Assembly: GCA_016748015.1 (NCBI GenBank)
Contig: JAAOMT010000786.1
Coordinates: forward strand, 561,814 to 625,813
Direction: 5' to 3'
Length of the DNA stretch: 64,000 nucleotides
From: Geosiphon pyriformis uo1
Lineage: Eukaryota; Fungi; Glomeromycota
Position 1 is the first letter of the stretch; each line of letters starts with the position of its first letter. Of the stretch, positions 9,451 to 54,100 are shown in pieces. A program made the translations under genes and the position numbers. The notes under the pieces were generated by a model. It was given only the letters and a program-made list of their open reading frames with translations, was not told the DNA's origin and searched no databases.

Positions 9451-9937
9451 AATTACAATAAATTATTAAAACTATATATTATAAAAATACAAATTATTTT
9501 ATTATTAATATTTTAATAAAGTATATTTAAAAATTATTTAATATAATATATCAAACTAAGTAATTTAAATTAGATATTAATCATGTATTTTCTATATATA
9601 ACTAATTATCTAAGTCAATTAAAGCATTAATTAAGCTAAACCAAAAGAAGTTAAGAGTAAATTCTGTTTACTAAGTCTTTTAATAATATTATTCAAATTT
9701 CTAGAATTAAAAATAAATTTACTTAAAAACAATTTATTTTTCTTAATATTATTTTTAATATTAAAACTACATATTTATCACAAAATAATTATATAATTAC
9801 ATATTTTTTTACTCAAAAAACATGCTTTAGCAATACTTAAATCATTATTATTCATATTATTAAATTTAATCTCAGTTTTAAGATTTATAAAGTTTTTAAA
9901 CAAACCAGCTAAAAAAAAACAAAGCTCTAAAAAGTAT

Positions 9938-10714
9938 TATTATTTATAAAAATTAAGAATTATAATAAATAGATAAAATGGCCAATTAGAAATAGGCATA
10001 ATAAAAAAAAATTCCAGAATTCTTTCAAAAAAATTGAAGAATTTCAAAAAATTTTATATAACATAAATTATGTATATATAGCAAAAGTATTAGAAGCAAA
10101 AAAGACAAACAATTCAGTTTAGAACAACAATACCCCTTCTTTCAAAAGATAGTTTTTTATAACTTGAAATGAAATTATACTTATATCAATAAAACATCTA
10201 TTATTATTTAAATTCATATTATTATTACTTAATTAAAAAAATATTAATCTATTTTATATTATTAATGCTTTATATTGATAAAATCTAATATTTAACTACA
10301 TTGAACCAATAGCTCTTGATTATGATTATTAATAGAATATTAATTTCTTATTTTTTTTCTTATTTTCTTTTTATTTTCTTTTATTTTGTTTTTTTTGTTG
10401 TTTACTAATTAATTAAAAGATTAAGCACTAAGTAATTAATATTAAGAATAGTTTGGTAAAAGATCTGGAAACAAAGATAAAAATTTAAAGATAGCTTATT
10501 AGAAGAGCACAATTGCTAAAATAAACTGGTTATTATATTGAAAAAAGAAATTCACAAAATAAAATTATCTATTAAATTTCTATTCATTATACAAAGAACT
10601 TAACCAAAACTTTTAGACTCTAAAATTTTCAAAAACTATCAATATTTTTAACTATTAAGCACCAAATTACGAGTTTGTTATTTGTTTTAACATTCCAAAT
10701 AATTATCTGTAATA
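9938..10714 (+). repeat. 5' LTR
   Basis: Colinear with 14291-15084; the differences checked are mostly transitions. Confidence 0.88.
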
Positions 10715-10716
10715 TT

Positions 10717-10733
10717 TGGTGCTTTCTGTAAAA
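10717..10733 (+). promoter_or_regulatory. Primer-binding site, probably elongator tRNA-Met
   Basis: TGGTGCTTTCTGTAAAA 2 nt after the LTR end; TGG complements the tRNA CCA and the rest fits G>A-decayed TGGTGCT..TGTGAGG. Confidence 0.6.
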
Positions 10734-11650
10734 TATAATTTAACAAAAAACCAGCACTAACATTAATCATCCAAAAAAATTACAGAATTAGAAGTAATAG
10801 GAACAAATTATTTAAAATTTGCCAAATTTTTATTTTAATATTACCAAACTCATCTTGAACTAACAAGTAACTATTGGTTAGCAGAATTAGCTTTCAATTT
10901 ATATGTTAACAAAAAAATTAAATTCTACTTGAGAAACCAAAAAGATCCAGAAGCCATACTTAAAATTTTTTATAGTGAATCACTCTAAAACATTATGTTT
11001 CCATAAAATTATTTGTTTATTTTACTAATCACAAAGATAAATTGAAAAATTGAGAATTACACTCAACAGAAATTTTTTATTATCTTCACAAACAAAAATA
11101 AAGGAAAGTTACAAACTCTAACAGAAAACCAAGAAAAATACAACCACTTACTTAAAAGAAACCAAAAGTTATTTCATCTATTTACTTATTATACTATTAT
11201 ATATCAAGAAGTACTATTCATATATTATTTGGATCTGTATTATTATTAACTGTAAAAACACTATTATCTAAAATACTATTCTAAAATAATTAAAAGAAAG
11301 CCAAATTATTAGAAACCTATGGCAATTTTTTTAAAGAATTTAAATTATAACCAACAATATTATTAAAACTTTGATTACCATTATCTCAACCAAATTTCGA
11401 ATCTACTAGTAATTGGGCAGATACCAAATCAAAAAAAAAAGAAGACAATAATCAGAAAAATAATAATCAAAACCCAATTCCAAATAACTTAAAAGTCTAA
11501 ACTTTAATTGTTTTAATTTAACAAAACCCAAACAATCTAAACCCAGCTCCTATTTTTCCACAAAACTTACCTTTAATTATCTTGATTAATCAACTGTCAG
11601 TAATACCAATTACTATTCAGTAATAACTACAACAATAACAACTTGCACAA

Positions 11651-14230
11651 ATAGTATATACATTAATTGCCAAACTTAAAAAATTTACAAATGAAGAAAA
11701 TAACATTTAAGTATACTTAAATGATATGACAAAAGCCATTGCAGCCAATAAATAGAATAATGCCAAAGCATTTCAAGCCATACTATACTTTTTTTAGAAT
11801 ACTGCTAACTTGTAGTATTAGAGCTTAATCAATAAGTTACAAATCTTTAATGTATTTAAAACCATGTTTTTATAATATTTTAACAATCATAACAGTATTA
11901 ATCAGTTATTAATTAGCTTTACTACTATTAAACAAAACAATACTAAAACAATCACCATATATCTGAAATGTTTCTATCAAAATTTGCACCAAATCCAGAC
12001 AATTAAAGCTAACTACTTTACAACATCACAGATCTTAAATCAATTCATTCATAAATTATACAGCAACTTATTACAATGAGTATGCCTAATATACCCAAAT
12101 ACTTTCTAAGATATAGTTATATATACCAGAAATTTTGAATTGACTGAACTCAAAGCTAACTATATATAAGTCATAAATTTAGTTATAAATGAATTATTTA
12201 AATTGGATTCTAAGCTGAAACAATTTAATAATTCAATCAACCAAAAATTAGAAAGATACTTAACTAACAATCAAGCAATCTATCAATCTCTTTAATATTG
12301 TGACAATTCAGAAAGTTTAAGTTGATTCTAAAATCAGCTGTGTCTATTATTATTATTATTATAAAATTAACTATGACAACAAAAAATGCATAATTGCTAC
12401 TACTGTAATAAACAAGACTATTTAAAAATAGATTGCTGCTTTAGATTTAATAACTCACAATTAGAAAACCAATATAGAAACTCTAATCACAGATTTCAAA
12501 CCCAGAACTACACCAACAATTTGTTATTAGAATTATACTAATCTTATTATGTACCAATAATATAATAATCTATATATATACCCTTAATATATCAAATTTT
12601 AGCACCAGTAATTTATTAATTATAGTCACAAGTAATTTATCAACTTTAACAAATTTAAACACCATTCCAACATATTGTGCTAATATTAATTAGAAACTAA
12701 AAACTAAAAATTATGCACATCTAATAAAACTAGAAATCAGTGATAGTAATGCACTAATCAATTATTGTAATATATAGATGCCAAAGTTAATAAACAATCT
12801 ATTAAATTAATCTTTAATAATAAATCAGCAAGCAGTATTATTACTTGACAATTTATAAACCAATTAGATTGTCAAGTTGATCATACTGCCACAGTTAAAA
12901 TTATTACAACTAATGAAATAACCAAGACTTTTATTGGTAAAATTAATGATTTCTTTTTCAAATTTAATAGCATTATTATATTTATTAAAGTTTTCATTAT
13001 AAAAGTCACATAATACCAAGTTCTTATTAGTAATAACTAACTGTTCAAACTAATATTATGCTTAACTGGAATATTCAAGAGTTATAACTTAGTCAAAATA
13101 GTCAATATACTTGAATACTAGTAATTTTTAGTTATTTTAAAACAATTTAATCACAATTACTAATAGAATTTGAAAAAAAAATAAACAAACTTATCTAAAA
13201 AGCTTATCAAATATTGTGGACTGAAGACAATCACAACAAACTATTACCAATCCTATTGTAAGATAACAAAAAAAAAAAAAAAAGAGAATAAACTGCAAGC
13301 TACTACTTTCACAAAAAAAACAAATAATAGTTGGTATGTTCTATACTTAATAGAACCAAAAAAAACCCACTTTATATTTTATTCAGATACAAAGACTACA
13401 AGAAAAAGTTTTTATTCATAGAAGCTTAAATATTATTCAAAGAAAACTACAAAATCTGTACTTGCTTCTATTGTAAAATGGGCTACTAAAAACATTTTAG
13501 GTATTCAAAATGATAAGAAAAGTAGAACAACAAATTATGTTTCACTTGTAAAGAAACATTACTTAATAAAAGAATATGGAATGACATTCCTGGCTAAAGA
13601 AAAATGTGTGACACATCTTATTAATACACAATTCTTATTAGTAATTGGATAAATTAAAGAATACTTTTTAATATTGTATAGAACCAAGTATTTTTGTATT
13701 TAAATAGCTATCTACATGATGAAAATAAGATTTAAAGAATAACAATTGTTAAAATTAAAAACATTTTACCTAGTAAAATACTTATCATAAAAACCAATAT
13801 ATTAAAACTCATTAAAACTATTTTTATTTCAAATTCAGACATTTTTGTCAATATTTTAAATAATTTAAAGCAATTTCACGAATATTATTAAGATCTAACA
13901 CTTACTAAAGAAAAACAAGAGCAGTATTTAAAACAATTAAATACTAAACTCTGTAAACATTGTCTAATTCTTAGTGACTTTAAATATTGTGACAATTGTG
14001 ATCTTATTTACAATTTATTATTATATATTATTTATTTAATTCCCAAAGAAAAAGAACTAATTAGCAGCTGTGCTTCAAAATTAAAATTAAAATTTAATCC
14101 CAATTTAGTCTTCAATAATAATAACAACAACAGTTTTAACTTTATCCATAATGATAATAACAATAATGATAATTTAAACTTCAATAAAAACTTCAAACAA
14201 TATATTGTGTTTTCAAATCTTTTCAAGAAG
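11651..14230 (+). pseudogene. Decayed gag - CCHC knuckle - aspartic protease - Cys-rich region
   Basis: Gag-like text from 11651; CYYCNKQDYLKIDC at 12395-12436 (decayed CX2CX4HX4C); IKLIFNNKSASSII at 12801-12842 (decayed IKLILDSGSAGSII); CKHCL...YCDNCDLIYN at ~13952-14015. Confidence 0.75.
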
Positions 14231-14290
14231 CTAGAAGATTTAAAAGATTTAAAATATCTTGATGGAACTTAATATTAAAAAAAATAATAT

Positions 14291-15084
14291 TATTACTTAT
14301 AGAAATTAGAAATTATAATAAATAGATAAAATAAACAATCAAAAATAGATATAATAAAAAGAAAAATTCCAAGATTCCTTTCAAGAAATTGCAGGATTCC
14401 AGAATTTTTTTCAAAAAAATTAAAAAATTTCAAGAAATCTTGTATAATACAAATTATATATATATAACAAAAGTATTAGAAGCAAAAAAAACAGACAATT
14501 CAATTCAGAATAATAATACTCCTTCTTTTAAAAAATAGTTTTCTATAACTTAAAGTGAAATTATACTTATATTAATAATACATCTATTATCACTCAAATC
14601 CATATTATCATTATTTGATTAAAAAAATATTAATCTATTTTATACTATCAATACTTTATGTTGATAAAATTCAATATTTAACTATACTAAACCAATAGTT
14701 TTTGATTATAGTTATTGACAAAATACTAATTTTTTATTTTTTTTCTTATTTTTTTTATTTTGTTTTCTTTGTTGTTTACTAATTAATTAAGAAATTAAGT
14801 GCTAAATAATTAACATCAAAAATAGCCTGATAAAAAATCTGAAAACAAAGATAAAAATTTAAAAATAGCTTACCAAAAAAGCACAACTGTTAGAATAAAC
14901 TAGTCATTACATTAAAAAAAATTCACAGAATAAAACCATTAATTAAATCTTTGTCTATTATATAAAAAACTCAACCAAAATTTTTAGACTTCAAAACCTT
15001 CAAAATTACCAACATTCCCAGCTATTGAACATCAAATTACAAGTTTGTTATTTGTTTTAATACTCCAAATAATTATCTGTAATA
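14291..15084 (+). repeat. 3' LTR
   Basis: Matches the 5' LTR and is followed by TSD GTAT. Confidence 0.88.
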
Positions 15085-16004
15085 GTATTAAGTATAATAA
15101 GCAAATTTTTTTCAACTTTGTGACTTTTGCACATATTGTTTAATATTAAAAAAGTAACTAAAACAACTAAAAAACTAATAAGTTCAATAATAAATTTTAC
15201 TAAAACAATCAAACTTAAAATCTAAAATTCTAAAAAATTCAATCTAGACTTAATGACAAAATCAATAATAAAAATAGCCAAAAAAACAATAAAAAAAAAT
15301 TAAAAAAGCAGAAACTATAGCATAAGATATGTTATTAATAACAGAAAACATAAAAAACCAAGAGTTAACAACTGATTTTAAAGACAACTTGAAAAAAAAA
15401 GAGAAAACATCTTATAATTAACAAACAAATGATTTAAATTTTAATATAATAGTAATAGCATTTAACAGTTTCTTATTAAATACAATATTTGTGTAAAGTA
15501 TTAGTTTTTTTTATATTAAGCTTTAATATTTTTTTCTATTTAAAAGTAACAACAGCAAATGGTTAATAACAATAAGAATTTAGAAAATAAAAAATAAAAC
15601 AAGTATGGCTACTAATTTAAAAAATTATATTACTAATTTTAAAAGCAGTATAGATAAAAAAAAAATTAACCAATTTGGTCTTAAAAATTTTTTTTGAGAT
15701 AATAACTTTTTTTTAATTAAGAAAAAAAAAATTCAAATACTATTTTTTTTAATCTGTACAAATTAGTTATTAAAAGCAGCAGTAACAAATAAAAAGTTCT
15801 TAAAATTAATAATAATATATTATTATAAACCAGTAAGTTTTAATTTAACAAAAATAACAATACCAAAAACACTAAAAATATTTTTAATATTATTAAAAAA
15901 TATATTAAGAAAAACATTATAAAATATAATAAAAATAAAAAAAAAGACCAGAAGCTACTACAAAAAATTTTGCAATCTTAAATATAAACAAAAAAAATAA
16001 CCAC

Positions 16005-16979
16005 TGTTACTCATAGAAAATACAAAAAAAAAAGCTGAAAAAACAGATAAAAAAATAGACTAATAGAAGAATAATACTTAATATATAAGCACAATAATAT
16101 ATTGCTCAGCAATATGCATATTGTTAGCAAATTATGACACACTGCTTAGCAATGTAAACAATGTTAGTAAATTATGGCACACTGCTCAACAATGTAAACA
16201 ATATTAATAAATTAAAACATATTACTCAAGAAAATATGAAATTTCATAGAACAAAAAATATGTATATATAGTAAGAGTATTAGAAACAGAAAAAACAGAA
16301 TTTATCCAAGAATTCAGTTCAGAATCAATACTCACAACTCATTAATTATTTTATATTTCTCTCTTTAAAAAGTAGTTTTCTATAACTTGAAACAGAATCA
16401 AATTATATATTAATAAAATATTAATTATTACTTAAGTCTATATTATTATTGCTTGATTAAAGAAATATTAAACACTTCTACTTTATCAACACTTTATGTT
16501 GATAGAATCTAATACTTAATTCTATTAAACCAATAACTTTTAATCATAGCTATTAACAGAATACTAATTTCTTAAATTTTTTAATTTTTTTTTATTTTTT
16601 TATCTTTTTTTACTTTCTTTTGTTTGTTTTGTTGATTTACTAACTGATTAAAAAAAATTAAGCATTGAGTATTTTAATATTAAAGATAGCTTGATAAAAG
16701 ACCCAGAAATAAGTGTATAGAATTCGAAAATTAAAGATAGCTTATTAGAAGGGCATAACTGTTAAAATAAACCAGCCATTACACTAAAAAAAAATTGATG
16801 GAATAACTATTCTGAAAGACTACTAAAACAACTATTGAATTTTTGTTCATTATACAAAAAACTCCATTAAAATCTTCAGATCATAAAAATCTTCAGATAT
16901 TATCAATACCACTCAACTATTAAACACCAAGTTATAAGTTAGTTATTTATACCAACACTCCAAATAATCACCTGTAATA
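16005..16979 (+). mobile_element. Solo LTR (long subfamily with internal 40-bp tandem repeat)
   Basis: TGTTAC...GTAATA ends; TSD CCAC (16001-16004) / TTAC (16980-16983); 3' part homologous to the other LTRs. Confidence 0.85.
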
Positions 16980-17901
16980 TTACTAATAGAAATTTTAATA
17001 ACAATAACCAAAAAAGCTTTAAAAACAAAATTTATATAGAACAACTTAATATTATTTTTGGAAACCAACTTAAATCTAACAAAGCCAGACAATAAATAAA
17101 ACAAAAAATTAACTAAGACCAACTTGATCTTAAAAATAAAGCCAAATATCAAAAACTATTTATTTAAAAAATTTTTAATAACTAAAAATTATTTTTCAGA
17201 CATTATCAAAAACAGTACCAAAAACAAAAAAAAAGAAATTAATTTAATTTCTATTTAATTAGTTCAATTTTTAAAATCAGATAATTTAATAAATTGTTTT
17301 GTTTTTAGAACTAACAATAATTTGCTAAAAGACACTATATTTGACAACACAATTAGTAGTTAATTTTAGTTTATTTTAAGAAACATATTATTATTAAAAA
17401 CTTTTAGGCTTTTGGAAAAAATAAAAATAATACTAGAACTAACTTGAATGTGTTTTTTAAAAAAACTTTAACTGATAAAAAATCACTAATTAAAAATAAA
17501 AAAAATGCTTTAAAAGCTGTCAAAATAACAGATATTAAGAATTTTTTTATTAACAAAAAGTATATTTAAGCCAAATTTTCTTAAAATGCACTTAAACATT
17601 AAATTTTTTTCAAATATAATGCTCAAAAAAATATTGTTAAATAAATAGTTTTCTTATTTAGTTTTAGTAATTTTGTAGCTTATAATTGATTATTAAACAC
17701 AGTTTAATTTTATGACTAAAAGTATATATCAGAAATAAGATATTATAATTAAAGAAGACTTTGATTTAAGACTAATTTGCCAAAAGACTTTACATTATCT
17801 ATTTTTATATAGATTGAAATTTTTTGAACAAATACAAGCAGAAAGCAAAATAGTTTTGGTAATTAAGTTCTTTAATATAGTAAAAATTCTTAGTTATTTA
17901 T

Positions 17902-18676
17902 TATTACTTATAAAAATTTAGGAATTCTTAATAAGAATATAAAGTAGTCAATTAGAAATAGGTATAGTAAAAGAAAAATTTTAGAATTCTAAGAATTTTA
18001 GGATTCTCGGCTAGAAAAATTAAAGAAATCCAAAAAATTTTATATAATAGTAATTATGTATATATAACAAAAGTATTAAAAGCAAAAAAAAGAAGAATCA
18101 AATCTAATTTTCAATTAATTATTCAATATCCCTTTCTTTAAAAGATAGAATCAAATTACATATCAATAAAATATCAATTATTATTTCAATTTATATTATT
18201 ACTATTTGATTAAAAGAAATTATAACCATTTTTATTTTATCAATACTCTATATTAATAAAATTCAATACTTAACTACACTAGACCAATAGCTTTTGATTA
18301 TGGCTATTAACAAAATATTAATTTCTTATTTTTTTTATTTTTTTTATTTTGTTTGTTGTTACTAATTGATTAAAAAATTAATACATGAAATTATTGACAT
18401 TAAAAAAAACTGGTAAAAGACTCAGAAACAAGGGTAAAAACTCAGAATTAAAAATAGCTTATCAAAAAAAACTGGCCATTAAGCTAAGAAAAAATTTACA
18501 AAATAAGCTTTTAAAAGGATACTGAACAACCATTGAATCTTTGTTTATTATACAAAAGACTCAACCAAAACTTTTAGATTACAAAAACATTTAGAATTAC
18601 CAACAGCACCAAGTTATTAAGCACTAAGTTATGAGTTTGTTATTTATATCAACACTTCAAATAATCATTTGTAATA
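17902..18676 (+). mobile_element. Solo LTR inserted in LINE ORF2
   Basis: TATTAC...GTAATA ends; TSD TTAT/CTGT; removing it restores the LINE codons (GHL-FE). Confidence 0.85.
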
Positions 18677-19935
18677 CTGTTTAAATACTGTTTTTTGAAT
18701 TTGCAAATTGCAAGCTGGATATTAATAAACTTATTGTAATATCTAATCATATTAAAAGTTAGCTCTATAAATAATTTTTTTGTAAACATAGTAAAAATAT
18801 TTTTAAACAACAAGATTTCTTTGGCAAATAATTTGCTTAATGTTTTTTGTTTTTTTGGCTGGTTTTTGATGTTTAAAATTTTGGGTAATTTTTATTATTT
18901 TGGTGTGGTTTATTCTTTAAAGTGTTTTAAAATTGTTTTATAAAACAGATTGTTAAATAAACATAGATTGGTGATAAATTAAAAGACTTTTCATTGTTAA
19001 AAAAAATTGAGTTTTAAAGATCTAATACTATTGTGATTTGTAAAAATTTTAATCTATATAAATAATTCCTCTGTTAAAACTAATAAAATTATTTTTAGTT
19101 TGGTTGTTTAAATTTTTTGTGCTTGAAAAATTTTTCGAATATTTGGAAATATTTGCACAAACTATGAACTAAAGTAATTAATATTTATATTAATAGTTTT
19201 TTGAAAAAATTGGAAACAGCAAAGATGACTGATAGAAAAGTGGCTTATTTTTTTAATATTAAAATAAAAATAGGTATTAAAGTTTACAAATTGTTGTTTT
19301 TAATAATAATAAAACTATAGACAATTGTTTTGGCTTTGAAATATATTCTTTTGTCTTGTTTAATAGTTTTGTAAACAAATAGTTAAGCTATTATAAATGC
19401 ATATAATTTGGAGTTCAAGCAGTATTTATCAGATTTTTAGAATAAATATTGAATAAAAAGCATTATGTAACTAATTTAATTAGATTTAAGAATATTTTAA
19501 TGTAATAAGTAAAAATCAAAAAACATTTAAAAAATATTAGCAATAATTGGACAAATATTCTTGCTGGTATTATGATATAATCTCATATAATTTTTCTTAT
19601 TAGTGTTCACAAAAGATTTATTATGGCTAATAATTTGGTTATTTTGGACAATATTTGTTATTTTGTTTATAATATTTATTAGATTATTTATTATACTCAA
19701 TAAAAAGTGAATTTAGATTTAAGTATTATTAATAAATTATTTATTTATAAGATAAATTGGGCTTGTACTGTTAAAGTTTGGCATCCAAATTTTTATATGC
19801 TTTCTAGATTTATAAATAAAGCTTTAATAACTCTATATATATATTTGATAAAAGCAGTTTATAAAAAATTGTCAATTGTGATTAAAAAAAACTGTATAAC
19901 AAAGATTATTCAAATGTTTTCTACTTGTTATATAG

Positions 19936-20830
19936 TGTTACAGATAATTATTTAGGATGTTAAAACAAATAACAAACCTGTACCTTGGTGCTTAATAGCT
20001 GTTGATGATAATAGTTTTTGAAGATTTTGAAGTCTAAAAATTTTGGTTAAGTTCTTTGTATAATGAACAAAAATTTAATTAATAGTTTTTTTTGGTAAAA
20101 TTTTTTTTTAGTGTGATAACTGGTTTATTTTGACAGTTGTGCTCTTTTAATAAGCATTTTTAAGTTTTTTATTCTTGTTTTCAGATTTTTTACCAAATTA
20201 TCTTTGATATTAATTACTTAATACTTAATTTTTTTAAGTAATTAATAAACAATAAAAAAAACAAAACCAAAGAAAATAAAAGAAAATAAAAAAATGAAAT
20301 AAAAAATTAGTATTTCATTAATAAGCATAATTAAAAACTATTGGTTTAGTATAATTAAGTATCAAATTTTATTAATATATTTGTTAATAGTATAAAAGTA
20401 ATTAATATTTCTTAATTAAGCAATAATAATATAAATTTGAATAATAATAAATAATTTTATTGATAGGTATAATTTCACTTTAAGTTAATAAAAACTATTT
20501 TTTGAAAAATAAGGTATTAAGTAATTATTAATCTCTAGCTACTGTTTTTCTATTTGAATCTGTCTTTTTTGCTTTAAATACTCTTATTATATATATATAA
20601 TTCTTGTTATATAAGATTTCATACATTTCTGAACAATATGCTATGATTTTCTAATAATATATTTATTATTAAACAATATGTCATAATTTTTTAACAATGT
20701 GCTTATTGTTAAACAATATGTCCTAATTTTCTGAAAATATACTTATTTATTGAGTATTATTCTTTTATTAATTTATTTTTATTATTTGTTTTTTTTACTT
20801 CTTTCTTGTACTTTTTTTTTATAGGTAACA
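19936..20830 (-). mobile_element. Solo LTR, inverted, inserted in the LINE zinc-finger codons
   Basis: Intact TGTTAC...GTAACA ends; TSD ATAG/GTAA, both derivable from the GTGG of TGT GGT; reverse-complement homology to the other LTRs. Confidence 0.85.
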
Positions 20831-22669
20831 GTAATAATATTGAACTGTTAAATCATGTTTTTACTTGTTTAAAAAATATTTTTATATGCTTTAAAATTTT
20901 ATTAAATTGTGTTAAATTGTAAAAGTCTGTAATAAAAGCTTGTTTTTAATGTTTTTGGTGCTTCAGATTCTTTTATAATATATTTTGAATATAAATATCT
21001 ATACAATTTTATGCAAAAGTTTTGTTTTCAAAAATTGAATTAATAAAATAGTATTGGTTTTTGGTAATAAAAAAGAAATAATTTTAATAATAATTAATTT
21101 TGTCCACTATTTATCTAAAAAACACTATAATGTATTATGATTATTTAAATCCAAATTTAGAATAAATATAAAAAAAATAGCTTGATTAATAACACAAAAA
21201 TTTTATTAGATAATATATATAGATTGTTTAATATTTTATTAAAAAAAGTGGTTTATTTGCTTAGTGTTGTTGAATTATTTGCTATTAGTTTTAATTTGTG
21301 TAGAATTTTTTTGTTTTTTTCAGATTTAGATAATAGTATAAGTATTTATATAAGTGTATAATATTGTTATAATTGGTCTAAGTGATTGATCATATATAAT
21401 AAATACATAAATCATATTTAGTTGAGATTATTTAGTTTGTTTTTATATATTAAATAGTAGTTAAGTTATACTTATTAAATAATAATAAATAAAATAAAAT
21501 TTGGCTTAAATATTTTATAAAATTATATTATTTATAATTTTAAAAATAATTTTATTTTTATTAAAATTAAGTTGGTTTTTTTAATATAATATTTTTATAT
21601 ATATTTAATATCTAACTTTTTATTAATATTCTTATAAAAACTGTTTATTTTATTATTTTACAATACAAAATTTTTAAAAAACACATTAGATTTATTTATT
21701 TTTTTATTTAAATTATTAATAAATATTTTTAATACAAATATATTAATATTTAACTTTCTGGTTTTTTTGTTAAATTTGTTAAATTTAAAATTTAATATAT
21801 ATTTTTTTTATATTAAAATAGGTTTATTTTTACTTTTATTTTTAGTTATATTTATAATAATTATGTTTGTTCTATTTAACTTTATAAATAAAAAAAACCA
21901 AATAAAAAATTTTTTTTTGCTTTTTTTATAATTTAAAATAAATATATAAAACAATAATATATGCTAAATTAATAAAAAATAATATTTTTTAAAAGTTTTA
22001 AAAATTTTAAAATAATTAAAATTTGATAAATTAATAATTAAACTTGTTAAATTGGTTAAAAAAGCAACAAAAATCAGTTAAATAATTTATTTTAATTATA
22101 ATAACACAATACAAAAATTACATAAATAATATATTTAAATTAATCAAAATAAAAGTTTTTAAATAAACCAAAAAACTGTTTTTTTATAATACAATCTTTT
22201 TTAAATTATAAATTAATTTGTATTTATGTTTATATTATATAAAAAATTATTATTATTTAATTTTAATGTTATACAAATTTTATTAATATTTTATTAAATT
22301 AATAAAACATTATAATTATGTTATTTTCGAATTTAAAATTATATTAATATTAAAATATTATTTTTAATATTTAATATTTAATTATTTTAAATTATTTCAG
22401 TATTTTTTAAGTTGATTATATAAGTTTGATAATTTGTTATTTTTTCTTAATTTTAACAAATTTTTCCAGTTTACAATTTACATATTTACAAATTATTTAT
22501 TTTTTAAATTACTTAGTTTTTAAGCTATTAATTAATTTTATTTAAGATAAACCTTTTACTGAAATTAATTCAGATGAATATAATTTGCCTTTAAGTATAT
22601 CAATTTTATAAAAAATATAATTATTTTTCTACCACCTTTTTGGGTTTTGGAATTTTTAATAATAAAATT

Positions 22670-28949: not shown

Positions 28950-30436
28950 TTATTTTTTTAGCATTTCATGGGCTTGATTTATAACTTTCACTACACCGAG
29001 CACCTCAACTTCATTCTTGGGGGCATACTTCCTTAATAAAAATTCAATCGCATGAGTCTGTTCTAAAAAATCGTGAATAACGTCGCAAAGCACACGCAAA
29101 ATAAAATCGATCGGAGGTTGTAAAGCAAGGGGTGGTACTTTCCATTCTTGCTTATTTTCGTGACGCTGCTCTATAGATGGTGTTATGTGCAAACAATTTT
29201 CTTTAGACGCCATGTTTAGAATATCAAGCTCCCTCAAAAATCTACTCGAGATGCAATTAATTAATTGCCATAATATAACCCAATCCCACCCAGCATTAGC
29301 CATCAATAGTCGCTGACATGTTTCTATGAATTCAAATTTGGCCATTTCATCTTGCAAATCACGGATAGCATATTTGACCTCAAGTAAATCTGCCTTCATC
29401 CCAACATACATTATATCGAAAGCGGTCGATTGCGCCCAATTGTGATTAATGGAAATACAATCGCCTATGTTCTCAACCATGTGATACCATGATGAAGGAA
29501 CAAAAAGTGTCTCTCCAGTATGCTGATATACAACAAAGCGCCGGGCCTGTGCAAAATTTGGAAACATCTTTGAATCAACATCACGCAAGTCGTATACTAT
29601 ATTACCGAGGGGGTCTCTCAAAAGATGCTCTTGATCTGGAGGAAAAAGTGTCCATTTCTTTATACCGCAAATGTTTGCTGACCAAGAATAGGATCGATAA
29701 ACATCACAATGAAAGGGGGTAAAGGTCCCGTGGCCTCCCATGTAAACAAATCGATAATCATCGTTGGTATGGGCGATCCAGAATTCATTCATCCAATCAT
29801 CTTTACAAGACATGGAATTACTATGGTTAGATGATATAAACAACTTTTCACCTTAAAATAACTGAATTATTGATTTAAAACACCTTGAAATATTTCTGGT
29901 GTTTCGTAAGCATAATATTCAGGAAAAGTCTGGGCAAAGTGCCAATCCTTGCAATAGAGGAAAGGTTTTATTGGCAGGGATAGATCTTTGGCAGTTATAT
30001 TACTGATCTCCAAGGAAGTTTTTCGCCAGATATCAATAAACTCTTTAAATAACATTTTACTTCGAGCTTGATCCGTAAAATATTTTTTAGAACAATCAGC
30101 CACACATACCAGAGCCTCACCAAATTGTGATCGAAGATATTCAAAATTAGGCCGAACTTTTGCCCCGAGTGCGAGGCTATTATGATTCGAAACAGGTGTG
30201 ATTAAATCATCAACAGGGTTTGATGAGAAAGTCGTTATTTTTTGATTTTCATTCTCCACGTCAATCACCCATTCCTTTCTTGCCCTCCAATTCTCGGTCA
30301 TAGAAGGACCAATCAATAAAGGAAAATTTGGTAACAGATGATGGTTGAAAAAGTCTTGATATGAGGGTGGTTCGACGAGATATGGAATTTCTTGTATTTG
30401 GTTATAGGATCGTGAATAAGGCAAGGTTGAAGGCAT
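28950..30436 (-). CDS. JMJD4: JmjC 2-oxoglutarate/Fe oxygenase JMJD4 (eRF1 lysyl hydroxylase family); exons 30436-29884, 29800-28950
   Basis: YCKDWH, DDWMNEF, DYRFVYMG..TFTPFHCDV..SYSWSANICG.KKW, FVPSSWYHMVEN, SINHNW. Confidence 0.9.
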
Positions 30437-32329
30437 CCTTTCACGAGGATTGGCCAAAGTTCTTTAAAGCGAAGCCATTTATATAATTTAAAAAAAATAC
30501 GGATTAAGAATTTAAAGAAAATCAAACAATTAATATCATCGTCTTCAAATTATAAGCTTGTGACAAACTATAAGCAGCCTCTTGAACGTTCTCGATAATC
30601 AACCTTCAAAATAAGTATCTGCCGTAATTGGCAAGTTTTCTTGTCAGCGACTTTTTTTACTTCTACCGAAGCAAAAACAAGCTTTAAAAAATTGAATCAT
30701 GAATTTTTGATTAATAGAATCAGAAAAAGTGAACAAAGAAATTTCAGCGAGCAAAAATCGGCTAACATTTTCATTTAATCATATGCTTAGATTTTTTGGA
30801 ACCAATAGCAAAGCCAATAAAACCAAGTGAAGAGTAGATAATTTCAGTTTCGGAGGAGGGTAGAAGTAATAATTAAAATAAATTTGGATAAATCTACTTT
30901 CTGATTAAATAAATTATATATTTGTTTTTTGTTAAAACTTCTTCCAATCTTTGATTTTTCTCAATCTTTTAAAAGCAAATAATGTAAAATCTCAGTTTTT
31001 TATTGTGAAATTTATTTTTAAATTTTTTAGAATTTTATGTAAAGCTTATTCTAACTTCACAATAAAATTTTTGTTAAGTTTTGCACAAAATTTAATTATA
31101 AAACTTTTTATTATGTATTATTTAAATACATTGGCATTTTTAACCATATATTTAATTGTTATATATTTAATTGATTACAAAAGTTGATTATTAATAATAA
31201 ATATTCAAACTTTTTTTTTTGTATTTTTTTATTTTTTATTTTTGTTAAATTTTTGGCTTTTAAAAATATTTTTTGTAAAAATAAAACTGTAATTAAAAAA
31301 TTCAAACTTGGACATTTTTATGTATATTTTTAATATTTTTATATGTTTTATGGTTTTAAGTCTTAAAACAATATAATATATATATTTTTATTTATTTATT
31401 TTTGTTTATAATGTAGTTTAATTACAAATTATTTTTGTATAAACCAATTATTATATATTAAATATAAATTGTATATAATTAGCCATTTATATTTTTTAAT
31501 ATATAATTATAATATTTTAATATTTTTTAATAAATAAATAAATTTAACACAAATTTTTAGACAAAAATATTTTTATAATTACAATTAAAACAAAAAACAA
31601 AAAACTTTAAGTTTTTTTTAAATAATATAAACACAAAATAGTTTTTGTATGCTAATAAAACATTTTTTTTGGCTTTAAATATGAGTTTATTCTTATTTAA
31701 TATTTTTTTATGTAATATTTTTTTATTAATAAAACCAATTAACAAATAAAAACAGTTTTAATAGCTTTAAAAAATTTAAAATACATAATAATATATTGTT
31801 ATAAACTAATAAATTTAACTTAATATTAAAAATATTTTTTATTTATTAAAAAAATATCTAAAAACATATTATATACAATTATAATAGTAAATTCAAAAAT
31901 AAAAATAAATATTACAAAATATTTGACAATTTTAAAAGTAAAAAAAAATGTTTTAATAAACTTAATTTTGGCAAGAATATTTAAAAAAAACTTAAAAAAC
32001 AAATTTACATAAAAAAGTATAATATTAATTTTAATAATTAATTTTAAATTAAAATTATATTAAAAATAATTAAAAATACCAAAGTATTTTATGATTAAAA
32101 ATAAATATATGTATAAATAATATTAATTAGCAAAAAAAATTTAGTAATTAAATTATCAAAAAATTAAAATTTATTTTTATTTTAAATAAAATATAACTTA
32201 TTATTATTTATTAAACAAATATTGTTTTAATATATTAAATCAATAATTTTTAATTATAATTATTAATAAAATATTAATTTCTTTTTTTATTATTATGTTA
32301 ATTAATTAATTTATTAAAGAAATAAGTAT

Positions 32330-38589: not shown

Positions 38590-40835
38590 TGCATTTAATA
38601 AGTGTAGCCCAATCACTATCTAGTACATAGAGCCAAACTAAGAGGCTCAAACTAAATGCAACTCATGTACTCTCTACATGTGGCTAGCCATTCAGGCCAG
38701 ACAAGACTATACTACACACTTATATTAACCCGCACACTGCCACCCAGACCAGAAAAGAAACAAAATGGCCTTTGATGACCAAAGCTAACAGCAAAAGAAT
38801 TGGCCACATCAAGCAATCTTACAATGCCATCAGAAACAACACCACCATCACAAACCAGACCAGCCTTCTCTATAACCACCCAGAGGCTGGACCTAACCAA
38901 CCACACCTTAGCACGATGTAACCTAACAACAAATCTGACATAATCAACAATCTGAGCAGCAGCCACCTTTCTATCCTCGAAAACACTGCAAGCCTCCTCA
39001 AACCATTCCCTCAGCACAAATTCTTTGCAAACTAAAGAATACAACCTGACATCAATAAAACATTGAGACAAAACTCACAACATGGCGGAAGTAAGAGAAC
39101 CACCAGCCAAAACTAACCAATGGGCAGAAGTCTCAGCCAAGATCTCACCATGAATGCCAACCTCATGAACACAAATAAAAACATGGTCAGAGAATTTCAT
39201 CCCACTGCACAATAAACACAACACATTAGGGTAGCACCTATCATACAATCTTTTTTATACCACCACTGGCAATTTCTTGTGTACAGCCTTCATAAGATAA
39301 GTGCGGAGCATTGAGGACTTATGACTAGTAAACCCAGCGAGCATATAAGAATCAGGATGCCATACTTTTGCAGTGACAACCCAGTCTATGCAACCAATTA
39401 TCACGTCTGAAACCACATCACAACCAGGACCAGCTTTTCAACAAGCACAACAAATAGACTGAAAAATATTCCTAACAAAATAATGGATATTGCCAGAGAT
39501 AGCAACATTCTCAGCAACCAAAAAATGTTCACGCATATTGGCAAAAAGAGAAAAGGGGGATCCAGAGGCAGCCCCAGCTGCCAAGTCAGCTTCCACATTT
39601 TCAGGAATCTCAGAGTAATCCTTTACCTTAACTCAACTTACACTAAGATCTTTATCTCTGACCAAATTAAAAATATGCCACTTCTCCAGCCAGCATTGGT
39701 TATGGAAATCGGAGGTAGCCAAAAACATCTTAGACACACATACATCAATAGCAGCCTGACTGTCAAGATACAACACCACAGTACTTGAAGAAAAAACACA
39801 CACCAGAGACAAAGCAACAGTCTGTAATTTGGCTATAGTAGATGACAAAAGACCACGAACAGTAATACTAATGCTCTTATCCAAGACTAGAAAGTATGCA
39901 GCAGCACCACAGGTAACCTCAGCAGAGCCTGCATTCCTTAAAGACCCATCCATAAAAACTTTAAAAGAGCCTGACCAAATGTCATGCAAACCATCTTTCA
40001 CTACAGAAAATTCCCTAGACCCCAAAATGTCCAAACCAAGCTTCTCCATAGAGCTAACAGGACCAGAAAATGGATAACCCTGATCCTTCAAAAACTCAGA
40101 AGAAACCATGAACCAATGAGACACAGGACCATGCAGATCCAATTTTTTCCAATGACAAAAAGTTTTTCAATCCAACAAGACACCTTTCTTATCAAAAAGC
40201 CAATCACTAAAAGCGACATCAAAGCATTTAAGAGATTTGACTGAATCAAAATACAGAGACTTTCCAAGAATAGAGGACAATAGAAAATGACCAGGATTAC
40301 AAAATGCAGTAGGGAAGTTGTTCACCAAAAACAACTTATTGCCCAAAAAAATCTTTACCATCTCAGCCAAAAAATTGTTCACTGGATTAATATGCAACCT
40401 AACCGGAAACTGCAACGGATCCAAAGGAATCCAACCAAAAACCTGTAGATCCAAAAACCTATAACAAAACAAAAGTCCAAGAATACTAAGGGCATTAGAG
40501 AACATTATCAGAGCAGCAACCTTTCCTTCTAATTGCACCTGCTCAAAAGGCTTCAGGCCATATAATGAAGGATGATACAAAGCAGCATCAGGAAAATCAT
40601 GGAAAAGACAAGCCTTAGACCTGAGACCTTTTCTAACCAAGACATCTCACTTGCGACAGACATTAAAAGAGACAAAACTGAACTGAATACGATAACTAAC
40701 AATAGGCTGCAAAACAGCCAAAACCAGATAGGAGAATTGTTTATCTGTGATAGCCTTCCTGAGCACAACATTGACGAAGAAACGTACATTTACATGAGTC
40801 TTGGCAACACTCAGCTTGGAAAGCTCCTCAGTTCC
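38590..40835 (-). mobile_element. LINE 3' portion (RNase H, zinc finger, 3' UTR), tail-to-tail with the previous copy
   Basis: ORF pieces starting 40640, 40142 and 39071 share one frame and are homologous to 36178-38352; 3' UTR at ~38590-38711. Confidence 0.92.
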
Positions 40836-42491
40836 AAAATAAATTTGTTAAAAAAAAAACAAAAAACATTAAAAATATTATTATAATAATTAAATTTCTG
40901 TTTTTTTATAAAAAAAACTTTACAATAAAATTTTTAAATTTATTATATATATAATAGCATTAAATTATAAAAATTTATTCAAAAACAATATTTATAAAAA
41001 TATTATTAAAATTAATAATATTTTTAAAAAACAAAAAAAAAATATATTTTGGTATATATTTTATTAACTTAATTTATAAAATTAAATAATTTAATAAATT
41101 AATTAGTGTAAATTATAATTAGAAACATAACTTGTTTTGTATTTAAAACTAATAATATACAATTAAAATTTAACATATTAAGCAACTTAATTATATGTTA
41201 TAATTATTATTATTATTAAAACAAAAAAAAATATTATTTATAACCAAAATATTATAATTAATACAGTTATAACAAAATTAATAAAAACATTAAAAAATCA
41301 AAAAAGTTAATGTTTTATTTTTACAAAAAAAAAAGATAAATCTTAAATCAAAAATAATAATTTTAGAAAATATTAAAAAAAATAGTTTTTTTAAGAAAAA
41401 TAAAGGTTGTTTTTTTGGTTTTTTTTAGTTATTTAAAAAAAAGTTAATAAATAAAAAAGTAACTTTGTTAACAGTTTGCTGTTAAAAAATTTTGAATTTT
41501 ATAGTAGTAATAGTTTTTATTTGATTACTTGAAAAAAACTTTCTACTTACAACTGAAAAAAAGTTGGGTTTTTAATGATCAAAAACTGTTTTGTGTATCT
41601 TTATTATTTAGAAAAAGCACTTTAAAAAATACTGTTTAATTGGTTTTATTTTAAAAAAAACTTTTTGAGTATTAAAACTATTAAAAATAATAGAAAAATA
41701 AAAAGTTGTTTTTTTATTACTTTTTGCTTTAAATATTATTGTAAAAACATAAAGTATTATAAATTATATGACAATACATATTAATATTATAATATGTATT
41801 TTTTATTGTCAAATATTACAAATATTTGATAATTCAAGTATTTTAAAATAAATTTGGGTATCAACTTCAAAATAATTATTAAAAATAAAAATTTCATTTA
41901 ATTAGTAAAAATTCAATAAAACTGATTTTTTCTGAAAATTGAATTAATTAATACATATTAATTTGAACATTGAACAACGCTTTTCCAAAAAAAGTTTCCC
42001 CGACCGCCGTAGCACTGAGATGATCCGGAGAATAACCGGAACTTTATGAAGAGAGTTAGGCCATTTGAGTTAATAATGTTTGGCCAATCTTTGCCGCTAA
42101 GGAAAAATATGGGTGGCATAAGCAAGAATATACCGACGTTTCATTTTTACATTTCGTGTAATACTATCAACTATTCTGTGTTCTTCCAATAACTCTACGT
42201 AGTAAGTCTCCATCTTCTCGTTGGTTTATACAACAGAACGAAACCCTTAGAGAAAATTTTTGACCGTACAGAGTGTCTGTCACCAGCTTGCTACTCTTTG
42301 TGCCCGTTCTTATTGTCAACTTAAAACGTGTTCTTTCTCCTGGCACTTGTTGATATATATTGCACTTTTGGTAAACCGTACTCCCTGTTTTGAACAGGAG
42401 TTTAGCCTCTTTGTTCGTTCCCATAACTTACCCCCATAGACCTAATCATCCCTCGTAGCCTTATTTTTGAAAAAAAGCTTTTTGATTCGAG

Positions 42492-43818
42492 ATGATGCTA
42501 TACAAGCTCGTTGTACTTGGGGATGGAGGTGTTGGCAAGGTATGGAAACTAGAGCTGCAAGCAAACTCTGCGTTTTTGTATAATTAAACATTTTTAGTTC
42601 CTCTTAACAAAAAAATTTTTCTTACCTTAGACAGCACTCACAATTCAGGTTAGCGAAGTTTACTCTTTTATAAGATTGCTATTTTGGTTTTGTTTCCTGT
42701 TCAAGTCAGGGTTTTATTTAATTAACTAAAATTTATATATATTTATTTTATAGTTATGCTTGAATCATTTTGTTGGTAGGTATAGATGGAATCTCGCAAA
42801 ATATTCACAATACAAATGCTCTCTATCGAGGCCAAATCTTAATTAATTTTCCATCCCCAATTTATCTATTCTCCTGAAAAATATTTTTCAATATTGTCTA
42901 TAATTCACTTCACATGAAATATGGACATTAATAGAGGTCTGTAGAAATTATTTTTTAATTCCTATCAATTGTCTATAAATATATTCTGTATCTCTGTATG
43001 TTCTAAAATTTTCACAATTTTCATTATTAGACCTACGATCCCACAATTGAAGATTCATATCGAAAACAAGTAGTCATTGACGACCAACCATGTGTACTTG
43101 AAGTACTTGATACGGCCGGGCAAGGTAAGACTTAAAAAATTTTATTTATCCTAAAATCCATGAAATTCTTTTAGGTAATAAGGGAAGTTGAATACCTCTA
43201 TTTATAATGGGACCAGGCGAAATTAAGATTACAAAATTAAATTTTGAAACAAAATAATTTCTATTACGGAATATCCTTTATTTCATAAGAAGGTTCTCTT
43301 AAACATCAAAGATTTTTAATTTTTATATATATTATTCGCAAATATAGAGGAATACACGGCATTACGTGATCAATGGATCAGGTAATTTCGAATTGAAAAT
43401 ATTATTTTACATAATTAAATTCTTGGTAACTCTTTTAACTTTACATTTACTTATGATTATAAAAAATAAACATAGAGACGGGGAAGGTTTCCTGTTAGTT
43501 TATTCTATATCCTCACGTTCAACTTTTGACCGTGTACGACGATATCGTGATCAGATGATTCGTGTCAAAGACTCTGATATGGTACCACTTATGCTCGTTG
43601 GAAACAAGTGTGACAAAATTACGGAGAGAGAGGTCTCACGGGAAGAAGGAATAAACATGGCACGAAGTCTTGGATGCGAATTTATTGAAAGCTCAGCAAA
43701 AACCTGTGTTAACGTGGAAAGAGCATTCTATACAGTTGTAAGAATGATACGAGCCGGCCGAGAAGGCGGGAAAGAACACAAGAAAAATAAGAGAAAGGCC
43801 AAGTGTTTAATTTTATAG
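42492..43818 (+). CDS. ras2: Ras GTPase, fungal Ras2/RasB type; exons 42492-42539, 42631-42648, 42754-42775, 42935-42936 (microexon), 43031-43124, 43348-43381, 43476-43818
   Basis: [29 protein letters not shown](E)[13 protein letters not shown]...[22 protein letters not shown]...GNKCD...ESSAK; polybasic region plus CLIL CaaX. Confidence 0.93.
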
Positions 43819-45062
43819 ATTCTATTTTTTAATATTTGGTAATTCTTGGGTTAGGATCGAAGTTAGTTGGGAGGTGGGGGGAGTGATATTGAAATTGTAG
43901 ATAGAGCCTATGGTTGGAGATTGGAGGTGGGAGGTGAGAGGTGTGTGAGAGGTTAGGAAAAAAAGGCCGTAATTGAGAAATGGGAATGCATCGGTTTATT
44001 ATTATTAACCTATTTTTTATATATGTGCAACGCGTGAAACCGTCAAATACACCTACTTTTTTATAAGTTGATTTTTAGCACAAGCCCTTCTTTTTTGCTC
44101 TAACTACAGCCATCATTAGCATGATGTTTCTCGCTCTTTCTTGATCCTGTTTATTAGTCTAGAAAACCTTTACTTAGAATGGTTTCACCGTTTATAAATT
44201 TGATCTCTTTTCTATAATCATCCTCTTATTTTATTCCGAAAAACGACACATTCTTGACGTAATTTGATCGCATTACCACTTTATACCTCGTCTTTTCAAT
44301 TATAATTAAGTATTTTTTATTTTGAAAAAAAGAACTTCAAATTCACCTTTGTTTGTAGTACATGCAAATACCTATGCAAAAATATTTAGCGATCAAATCA
44401 CCACATGACCATTAATATATCATTTATTAGTATAGATCCTTTGGTTTTGAGGCTTCTTGTGGTCGATACCCCATCCCTCCCTCCCCCCCTCCTTTTATCC
44501 TTGATCCTAAAGAATCTTTGTTTCCTTTATTTGTAATACAAATACGGTGATGACATCTTATTCACTTATCCCAGTTATATCACTCAAATAAATATTGTTA
44601 TCACCATTTTAATTAATAATCACTTATGTTCTATTGGGTCACAATTTTCTTACTATCATACTAGATACAGTTTTTATGCCATTATTTTAAGCTAGGTTAT
44701 TTGATTCTTGAAATTAATTTTTAAATTCTCTTCTTTTTATCATTGTCTTATTTATATTTTACATTGTTTGTTCAAATCAACTTAAAAAAAATTAATTTAT
44801 ACAAAATATATTCAAATTGTGATATAAAAAAAAAATAAACGAATTTGATAATTATTCAGTTTGGGAATAAATTTTTTATTCAAAAATCAGACATCAAAAA
44901 AATAAAAATAAAAATAATAATAATTTCCAATTTATTTTGCCTTTTTATTTTATTAAAAATCTTTTTTATTATTAATATAACATATATATATATATGTTAT
45001 ATATGTATTATAAAAATGAATATTTATTTGATAATAAAAATTTTTTTTTATCACAAAAATAT

Positions 45063-51707: not shown

Positions 51708-52549
51708 CTATAGCAAATTGACGTTCATCTTTGTAACATTTTACTAGTAAATATTGCGTCTAATTGTTTATTCCCCATTTTTATTGAAAGAATTTATCAT
51801 TAATACTTTTTACTGTCCATTTGTTCATATTAATTAATTAATTAATTAATTAATAATTATTTTTTTTAATCTATTATCAACTATTGAAATTTGACAGGTT
51901 AAAAACGCCAATTTTTGTTTTTTACAAAAAATTTACACTTACGAAAAAGGGGTTTCTCAAGATTGTTTCGTGACAAAGCAAGTAAATAACAAAAAATGTG
52001 GCTCCTTCAATAAAGCCTCATTTTATATAAAAGCTAAATCATCAGCCATAAAGAATTATATACATGTTTGGTAATCAATACTTACAGCCAACAAACCTGT
52101 TATTAACACCATTTTTCAAGACGGTACTATCGTGCCACAACCGTTTTTTTTTTTTTTGAATGATCAAAAGCCAATCGAGTAACGGATTACAGGAGATGAT
52201 CCAGTTTTACTAATCAAGTATCCCATTCTGAAGGCTGCAAAAGAAAGTTATGACGGAATTCACTGGTCGAAACTTTTTTTTTAAAAAAAGTTTGTGAAAA
52301 TTCCACTTTAATCATGTGATTAAATACATGCAATGAATTACAATAAATTTAGAAGATTCTGAAATGGATGATATGGGTGATCTGTTTTACTGCTGTGTGT
52401 CGTTTCCCCCACCAGATGCAGCAAGAATCAAAGTTTGGCGTTGAGCAAACCATAAATTCAGAAATTTTTCATCTTTTGTTATAATAATAAAAAATAAACT
52501 TCTTATATTACCTTTTAAAGCCATTTTTTTATTCTTGCCAATAAAGTAT

Positions 52550-53755
52550 AATCAAATCAAAAAATAATGATTTTACTTTATATATATATATATATATATA
52601 TTAATTGATTGATTTTTTTTATATTTTTTAATTTTTAAATATTCTTTAATATATTTTTTTATATTATTAAACCAAGTTTTTTGTTTAAATATGTTATTTA
52701 TTAACAAAAATGAAATAAAATAAAATAAAATAAAATAAAATAAAATAAATAAAAACTAATTTTTTTTATTCTAAATTTTTTAAAAAAAATCTTTTTTTTT
52801 AAAAAAAGTTTTTTTGTTTAATAAATTGCAATATTAAAAAGTAAACAAAAAATATTAACACTAATAATATATGACTAAATTAAATTATATAAACAAAAAA
52901 AAATATTTAGTAAATTAAATATTATAAAAAAAAAGAGTTTTTTTTTTGAAAAATAATTTTTTTTTTTAAAATTTAATATATTAATTAATTAATTAATTAT
53001 TAATTTAATAATAATTTAATTAATTTTAATTTAAATAAAAAATATTTTTTTATATTTTTTGTTTTATATTATTAAATAGTCTATAATTGAAATTTCTTAT
53101 AGAAAAATTTATTTTTAAATATAATTTGTTATTAAATATAATTTGTTTTTAAATATTAAAAAAAAGTTTATTGTAACAAATAATATTAAATATTTAATAA
53201 TACTTATTATTTTATTAAAACTTTATATAATATTATTAATTATTTTTAATAAAATATTTTTAGTTTTAAATTTGATTTTATTAATCAAAAAACAATTAAT
53301 TTAAAACTATATTTAATAAAAATTTTATATAAAAAATTATTATTAATATATAATATTATTTATTTAATTATTAATTATATTAAATATAAAAAAAAATTTA
53401 ATTATATGTTTTTTATAAATTTAATTTAAATAATAAATTATTTGTTCTTAATAAATAAATATATATATATATATTTGAAAAATTTTATTTAAAATTTTAA
53501 TTCTTTTTGTTTTAAATATTATAATTATTAATTTAAATTTAAAAATAATAATAATAATTTTGTAATTTTAATTATTGTTAAAAAATTATATGTTTTTTGT
53601 TTTAAGTAAAAATTTTATTAATTTATTTATATTATTTAATATTATTTTATTAATTAATAATAATATTTAATGGTTTTTAATATTACTTATTTTTTAATTT
53701 TAAAAAATATAATTTTTTTTAATAATATAAACCAAATAAAATTTAGTTTTTAATA

Positions 53756-53786
<31 letters not shown>

Positions 53787-54100
53787 TATTAAATTATTTA
53801 ATAATTTTTTAAATTTGTAAATTTTTAATATAAAATCTAATAAAAAAAAAATACTAAACTATAATTAAATAAGTTGTTTAAAAATAATACAACTTTAAAA
53901 AATAAATAAATAAATAAATAAATAAATACAAAAAAACTATTATTAATACTTTATTTAATATAAAATATATATATGTTAAATATATTTAAAATAGTAATTG
54001 GAATATACTTTGTTAAAATAAAAATAATAATCAATTATGTATAAAAATTTATTTAATCTAAATGATAAATAATTTTAAAATTGACTTAATACATTAAAAA
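52550..54100. other. Ultra AT-rich island, probably a terminally eroded repeat
   Basis: Only scattered G/C over ~1.5 kb, same texture as the TE-island borders; no recognisable ORF. Confidence 0.6.

Follow-up and report, generated by a model that had tools for sequence, protein, structure and literature searches.

Evidence for a two-nucleotide exon in the Ras2 gene of Geosiphon pyriformis and of most fungal phyla

The Ras2 gene of Geosiphon pyriformis and its reading frame

The window, that is, the whole stretch of 64,000 nucleotides of the Geosiphon pyriformis genome analysed here, contains at positions 42492-43818 of the + strand a gene for a Ras-family GTPase. The last exon of this gene matches the public G. 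pyriformis protein G9A89_022916 (P0001) with 100% identity, and all Ras motifs are found, namely G1 (GxxxxGK[ST]), the switch, G3 (DTAGQ), G4 (NKxD), G5 (SAK) and the C-terminal CAAX box (CLIL); the Pfam Ras profile (PF00071, cut-off 21.6 bits) yields 88.8 bits for exon 6 and 29.4 bits for exon 4. The Ras2-type motif LCLNHFVETYDPT is matched by the exons combined, with LCLNHFV contributed by exon 3 and TYDPT by exon 4, and the closest relatives (in Ustilago, Lobosporangium, Gigaspora and others) bear the name small G-protein Ras2. The gene is the single Ras2-type GTPase of the Geosiphon genome; the Ras1 and Ral-like genes (loci L015 and L014, respectively), which are located elsewhere and differ from Ras2, have no intron at the position of the microexon described below. 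The Ras2 gene is located just past one of the blocks of low G+C content (12-23%, at window positions 8001-22000, 30001-32000, 40001-42000 and 52001-54000) that separate gene islands of 35-44% G+C. The exon map is as follows, all features lying on the + strand.

42492-42539, exon 1, 48 nt, with the start codon and the P-loop GDGGVGK (translation, spliced RNA contigs)
42540-42630, intron 1, 91 nt, GT-AG, absent from both RNA contigs
42631-42648, exon 2, 18 nt, TALTIQ (translation, RNA contigs)
42649-42753, intron 2, 105 nt, GT-AG (RNA contigs, splice signals)
42754-42775, exon 3, 22 nt, LCLNHFV and the first base, G, of codon 30, ending in phase 1 (RNA contigs)
42776-42934, putative intron 3a, 159 nt, gtaggt...attaatag (from conservation)
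42935-42936, very probable microexon AG, bases 2 and 3 of codon 30 (GAG, Glu) (mRNA and conservation in 24 loci)
42937-43030, putative intron 3b, 94 nt, gtctgt...cattattag (from conservation)
43031-43124, exon 4, 94 nt, with switch I and G3, ending in DTAGQ (translation, RNA contigs, Pfam)
43125-43347, intron 4, 223 nt, GT-AG (RNA contigs; joint 43122/43346, cut +2)
43348-43381, exon 5, 34 nt (translation, RNA contigs)
43382-43475, intron 5, 94 nt, GT-AG (RNA contigs; joint 43379/43474, cut +2)
43476-43818, coding part of exon 6, DGEGF...CLIL, with NKCD, SAK and the CAAX box; stop codon TAG at 43816-43818

According to the RNA contigs, the transcript continues past the stop codon to at least 44100. 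The acceptors of exons 5 and 6 (43340-43349 and 43470-43479) also contain a tandem tagAG, and the codons split there are G/AG and AG/A (slashes mark splice sites throughout), so that splits around AG recur in this gene.

The peculiarity of the locus lies between exons 3 and 4. Exon 3 reads TTA TGC TTG AAT CAT TTT GTT G and is followed by gtaggt; exons 1-3 total 88 nt and accordingly end in phase 1. Exon 4, preceded by ttattag, opens at 43031 with the complete codons ACC TAC GAT, the first of which encodes Thr. This clash of phases had been pointed out in a first-pass annotation made from the sequence alone, and every statement on which it was based checks out. A direct join of the two exons yields LRSHN followed by a stop, that is, termination after 5 codons. 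The alternative donor at 42780 is likewise out of frame, as the first-pass annotation had noted, and leads to a stop after 13 codons. The AG at 42778-42779 would require an impossible 2-nt intron to serve as the source of the missing bases, and no other acceptor is available upstream of 43030, given that there is no AG from 42945 to 43029.

The remaining candidate is the one proposed in the first-pass annotation, the AG at 42935-42936 within aatag/AG/gtctgt, which, as the sequence confirms, splits the 255 nt between exons 3 and 4 into 159 and 94 nt. This element (42933-42938) is the sole AGNNGT and the sole AGAG of the interval. The hexamer alone is not rare in Geosiphon, with AGARGT present in 4% of shuffles of the interval, and what makes it significant is the mRNA together with its conservation in other fungi. 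At 159 and 94 nt, the two pieces are inside the length range of introns in the Ras2 gene (91-223 nt). Weak branch-like TTCAC motifs (yTnAy) are located 23 and 28 nt from the 3' end of intron 3a and 17 nt from that of intron 3b, and the donor of intron 3b, gtctgt, has a C at +3. In an alignment to KRas, codon 30, which the two bases would complete, corresponds to Asp30, at the start of switch I. In all likelihood, the 255 nt comprise two ordinary GT-AG introns flanking a constitutive 2-nt exon.

Transcripts and orthologous loci

Four public runs, in the form of assembled contigs, were aligned to positions 42200-44100. One spliced contig is present in run X2 (study P2) and one in run X3 (study P1), of 1428 and 1623 nt, respectively, both with zero mismatches to the window; the aligned blocks (42200-42537, 42629-42646, 42752-42775, 43029-43122, 43346-43379 and 43474-44100) are contiguous in the records. 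In both contigs all introns are gone and the junction reads TTTGTTG-AG-ACCTAC, in frame, so that the mRNA predicted in the first-pass annotation, TTTGTTGAGACCTAC, is found in two runs from two studies. The bases AG between 42775 and 43031 cannot come from the flanking exons, the direct join of which leads to a stop. The same junction is seen in a second species, in which a metatranscriptome contig (L004) that matches the exons of a Gigaspora margarita locus (L006) at 100% identity reads GTG-GAG-ACA across the genomic sequence ...G/gt..atag/AG/gt..ttag/ACA.

A more trivial cause of the frame shift that results from joining the obvious exons could be an assembly artefact, with two bases lost or an AGAG collapsed at 43029-43030, or else a frameshifted pseudogene. 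An unspliced DNA contig from run X1 is identical to the window but may itself be the source of the assembly and hence is not an independent confirmation. The chance that the artefact or pseudogene explanation is correct is nevertheless negligible. The mRNA contigs are gap-free, mismatch-free, spliced and in frame; the same architecture is present in eleven independent fungal assemblies and 12 metagenomic contigs; and there is no second Ras2 in the genome. A collapsed AGAG, the possibility that the first-pass annotation had singled out for a check against raw sequence, is excluded by the identity of the X1 contig to the window and by the orthologous loci, none of which carries a tandem AGAG at the final acceptor. 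Nor are the spliced contigs derived from a retrocopy, exon 4 being single-copy in the genome and the spliced form being absent as DNA from the Geosiphon assembly. Within the reach of these data, the matching, in-frame, spliced mRNA rules out assembly error, a pseudogene and post-transcriptional recoding. A second DNA contig of run X1 (record 3) matches, with mismatches, two short pieces, 43031-43058 in exon 4 and 43451-43474 at the end of intron 5, and has 4640 other letters in between; rather than this locus, it probably represents a repeat or a different gene of the Ras family.

The aligner assigned the two bases to 43029-43030, with a joint at 42775/43029 that was reported as 'GT..TT, skips 253'. 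Among the assembled contigs, neither a splicing intermediate or lariat nor a sequence joined at 42934 or 42937 was encountered. Since exons of 2 nt are beyond what the program can take into account, a microexon and a non-canonical acceptor are not separated by the mRNA on its own, and orthologous loci were therefore compared. The hexamer YAG/AR/GT is present in the orthologous interval of 24 loci, of which 12 are named (including the window) and 12 are metagenomic, as expected from the suggestion of the first-pass annotation that ag/AG/gt would be conserved in orthologues; together, these loci cover most fungal phyla. The named loci, with taxon names as given by the sources, are from the Glomeromycotina Ambispora leptoticha, Rhizophagus irregularis, Gigaspora margarita (two loci) and Cetraspora pellucida, in addition to the window; from Umbelopsis vinacea and Lobosporangium transversale; from the chytrid Rhizophlyctis rosea and the zoopagomycete Piptocephalis tieghemiana; and from the basidiomycetes Violaceomyces palustris and Microbotryum lychnidis-dioicae. 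In each of the eleven other named loci, as in the window, exon 3 ends in ...HF[VI]+G/gt and exon 4 begins with ag/ACN TAY GAY. The 12 further genomic loci with the split structure were detected in a scan of metagenomes, and 11 of them are of the FTLNCFVETYDPT type, that of Agaricomycete Ras; the named members of this cluster are Agaricomycetes, among them Laccaria, Armillaria, Schizophyllum and Piloderma.

When the 24 loci are anchored on the exon, information is confined to positions -3 to +4 and +7 (with the first exon base as 0); YAG/AR/GTnnG shows little or no variation, and the flanks contain approximately 0 bits. AGARGT occurs by chance in 0.2-13% of shuffles per locus; multiplied over ten independent lineages, these per-locus values give approximately 4e-15. 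The half-intervals have the normal intron size for the respective genome, for example, 62 and 61 nt in the chytrid R. rosea, where CTAAC and TTAAC precede the two acceptors, and about 50-85 nt in Agaricomycetes. The microexon is AG in 21 of the 24 split loci and AA in the other three, namely a G. margarita paralogue (L003), L061 and L076, in which the resulting GAA codon preserves Glu. One Agaricomycete-type metagenomic locus (L056, upstream of 3004) has a C at the end of exon 3, before gtgagt, which would change the codon to CAG (Gln), and its exon reads FTLGCF; this may represent a paralogue that has diverged or a copy in decay.

These comparisons bear on the placement chosen by the aligner for both RNA contigs, under which a single non-canonical intron (42776-43028, GT..TT) is removed, the AG of the mRNA corresponds to genomic 43029-43030 and the ag/AG/gt in the middle of the interval is idle. 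Such an intron would make the 2-nt exon unnecessary and, given that AG directly precedes the Thr codon at every locus, the product would always be GAG. To our knowledge, spliceosomal introns ending in TT are essentially unheard of, which by itself speaks against this solution. Furthermore, the acceptor dinucleotide that it requires varies among the orthologues (TT, AT, AC, CC, GT, GC, CA and TC), whereas the only conserved element of the interval, YAG/AR/GT in 24 loci, and the normal intron length of each half-interval are left without an explanation. In the Agaricomycete family, two of the five transcripts of this type read GAA, bases that the AG at the acceptor could not supply, and all 11 genomic loci fetched for this family are split, although the GAA transcripts may derive from species that lack the introns. 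No close match to the AA loci (L003, L061 and L076) was found among the metagenomic transcripts. Considering all this evidence together, the GT..TT intron appears highly improbable. The requirement for a 2-nt AG microexon in Ras2, the central claim of the first-pass annotation, is supported by the AG in the mRNA and by the hexamer conserved in 24 loci; the use of the splice sites at 42934 and 42937 in particular is suggested by this conservation.

Distribution, age and misannotation of the microexon

The microexon is present in Chytridiomycota, in Zoopagomycota, in all three subphyla of Mucoromycota (Glomeromycotina, Mucoromycotina and Mortierellomycotina) and in three of three subphyla of Basidiomycota (Ustilaginomycotina, Pucciniomycotina and Agaricomycetes). 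It is absent from Ascomycota-like genomic loci, in which HFVETYDPT is contiguous, and from some chytrid-like loci (e.g., L065). The simplest reading of this phyletic pattern is that the microexon originated before the split between chytrids and Dikarya and that the two introns were subsequently lost jointly on repeated occasions; an age at least that of the common ancestor of chytrids and Dikarya is largely shown. The exon records a pair of intron positions, separated by 2 nt, that most fungal phyla have retained and Ascomycota-like lineages have lost jointly. Two metagenomic loci that resemble Pezizomycotina (L083:795-960 and L050:100-360) lack the microexon; in these, HFVE-T is contiguous and a phase-0 intron separates ET from YDPT, one codon later, which may reflect intron sliding or an independent intron.

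That annotation would miss the 2-nt exon had been anticipated in the first-pass annotation, and this is the case in Geosiphon itself. The public model P0001 (G9A89_022916, 178 aa) goes straight from exon 2 to exon 4 (42631-43124), a join that is in frame because exon 3 and the microexon together comprise 24 nt, and consequently lacks LCLNHFVE, including the Phe that aligns with Phe28 of KRas; the mRNA retains these residues. Of the 189 proteins of the Ras2 type that were gathered, 138 extend to the TYDPT exon; in 53 of the 138, the model breaks exactly at this junction, with exon 3 skipped, Val-Glu missing or an intron read through. The broken models include those of Rhizophagus irregularis, Mucor, Rhizopus, Phycomyces, Microbotryum and several mushrooms; further cases in Agaricales are Tetrapyrgos, Collybiopsis, Panaeolus, Agrocybe, Piloderma and Armillaria nabsnona. 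The model of Microbotryum lychnidis-dioicae (L012:2552-2810) uses the acceptor of the microexon but reads 14 nt through the donor to a later gt, resulting in HFIEVSML, with four false residues in switch I. Proteins derived from transcripts are intact, and so are some genome models (Lobosporangium, Laccaria and R. irregularis P0130), which indicates that some pipelines already place the junction correctly, albeit without comment. Thus, a central signalling GTPase is misannotated in many fungi since gene finders cannot place a 2-nt exon. A simple rule for repair is to look for an exon end ...HF[VI]+G, then YAG/AR/GT, and then ACN TAY GAY.

Probable mode of splicing of the microexon and its relationship to known ultra-short exons

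An exon of 2 nt would be too short for U1 at the downstream donor and U2AF at the upstream acceptor to be bound together, so introns 3a and 3b are probably removed one by one through intron definition, in the manner of recursive splice sites. Removal in either order would work. If intron 3a were excised first, the product TTGAG/gtctgt would be a donor in which AG forms the consensus exonic end of the 5' splice site; if intron 3b were excised first, aatag/AGACC would be an acceptor followed by AG, an acceptable first dinucleotide. The fit of AG to both steps may explain why it is found in 21 of the 24 split loci. In contiguous, mostly Ascomycota-like loci and transcripts, GAA and GAG were each found 12 times, although codon usage differs among taxa. 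Assistance from RNA folding that would bring the splice sites together was considered and rejected: the fold of 42754-43060 is unremarkable, with no unusual structure (z = -0.97).

The first-pass annotation had further proposed that Ras2 could be switched on and off by regulated splicing of the 2-nt exon, either included or skipped, an addition to the microexon reading rather than an alternative to it. Skipping would lead to a stop after five codons, leaving the skipped transcripts dead, such that inclusion would be needed for any Ras2 protein to be made, and the exon is retained in many lineages even though it can be absorbed by intron loss, as in Ascomycota-like loci. However, purifying selection on splice sites also predicts long retention, the interval contains neither a conserved element beyond the bare splice signals nor unusual RNA structure, and only the included, in-frame form was detected in the two runs, with the caveat that assembled contigs drop rare variants. 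The switch is accordingly unsupported, and we regard it as quite unlikely; the exon is apparently constitutive and very old. A related conjecture, also unlikely if perhaps slightly less so, is that the AG exon of Ras2, which could rank among the smallest and most ancient conserved exons known, has been retained for more than inertia, in that obligatory two-step splicing at the start of switch I would set or gate the level of productive Ras2 mRNA, with nonsense-mediated decay clearing the mis-spliced forms. Independently of such a role, the exon is an old natural test of how an intron-defining spliceosome deals with an exon too short for both splice-site complexes, and several of the fungi that carry it are transformable.

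Two known arrangements resemble that of Ras2 without being identical to it. Recursive splice sites are zero-length exons, AG/GT ratchet points in long introns of Drosophila and vertebrates. As in these sites, an acceptor in Ras2 adjoins a donor, removal would be stepwise and the regenerated 5' splice site would use the end of the upstream exon; but no base of a ratchet point persists in the mRNA, and such points serve very long introns, whereas in Ras2 both introns are short and two bases stay. A recursive site proper is therefore rejected, the AG being present in the mRNA. In stwintrons, an inner intron interrupts the splice signal of an outer one, with no exon bases between them. The Ras2 arrangement shares with fungal stwintrons two short introns, nested or abutting, and their probable sequential removal, but it is not a stwintron, given that the two exon bases between the introns are kept in the mRNA.

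Exons of comparable size have been reported in both fungi and plants. Long-read re-annotation of Coprinopsis cinerea lists 13 internal exons of 1 nt, 57 of 2 nt (spread over 50 genes) and 27 of 3 nt, the omission of which produces premature stops and broken gene models (PMC12230235). This survey is a genome-wide tally for one species, whereas the Ras2 exon is a single exon traced through most fungal phyla; its main text contains no statement that we could find on Ras or on conservation beyond the species (PMC12230235). In CYP621A of Fusarium, a 1-nt exon located inside a conserved motif is needed for the frame and had been missed by annotation; it was found via comparison of orthologues and is supported by public RNA reads (PMC12940212). 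That exon, however, is 1 nt long, is confined to one genus and belongs to a P450 of unknown function, in contrast to the 2 nt of the Ras2 exon and its spread across chytrids, Zoopagomycota, Mucoromycota and Basidiomycota. Land-plant APC11 and VPS55 contain constitutive 1-nt exons that have been conserved for hundreds of millions of years, are absent from reference annotations and were absorbed into a larger exon where the flanking introns were lost (PMC4674806, PMC8831610). These are other genes in another kingdom, and VPS55 has documented isoforms with and without the exon, whereas for Ras2 the two runs showed the included form alone. A literature search retrieved no paper on this Ras2 exon or on any 2-nt exon from Glomeromycota. 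Both plants and fungi are already known to have exons of 1-3 nt, and among these the Ras2 exon stands out by its age, by its location in a core signalling protein and by the extent of its misannotation.
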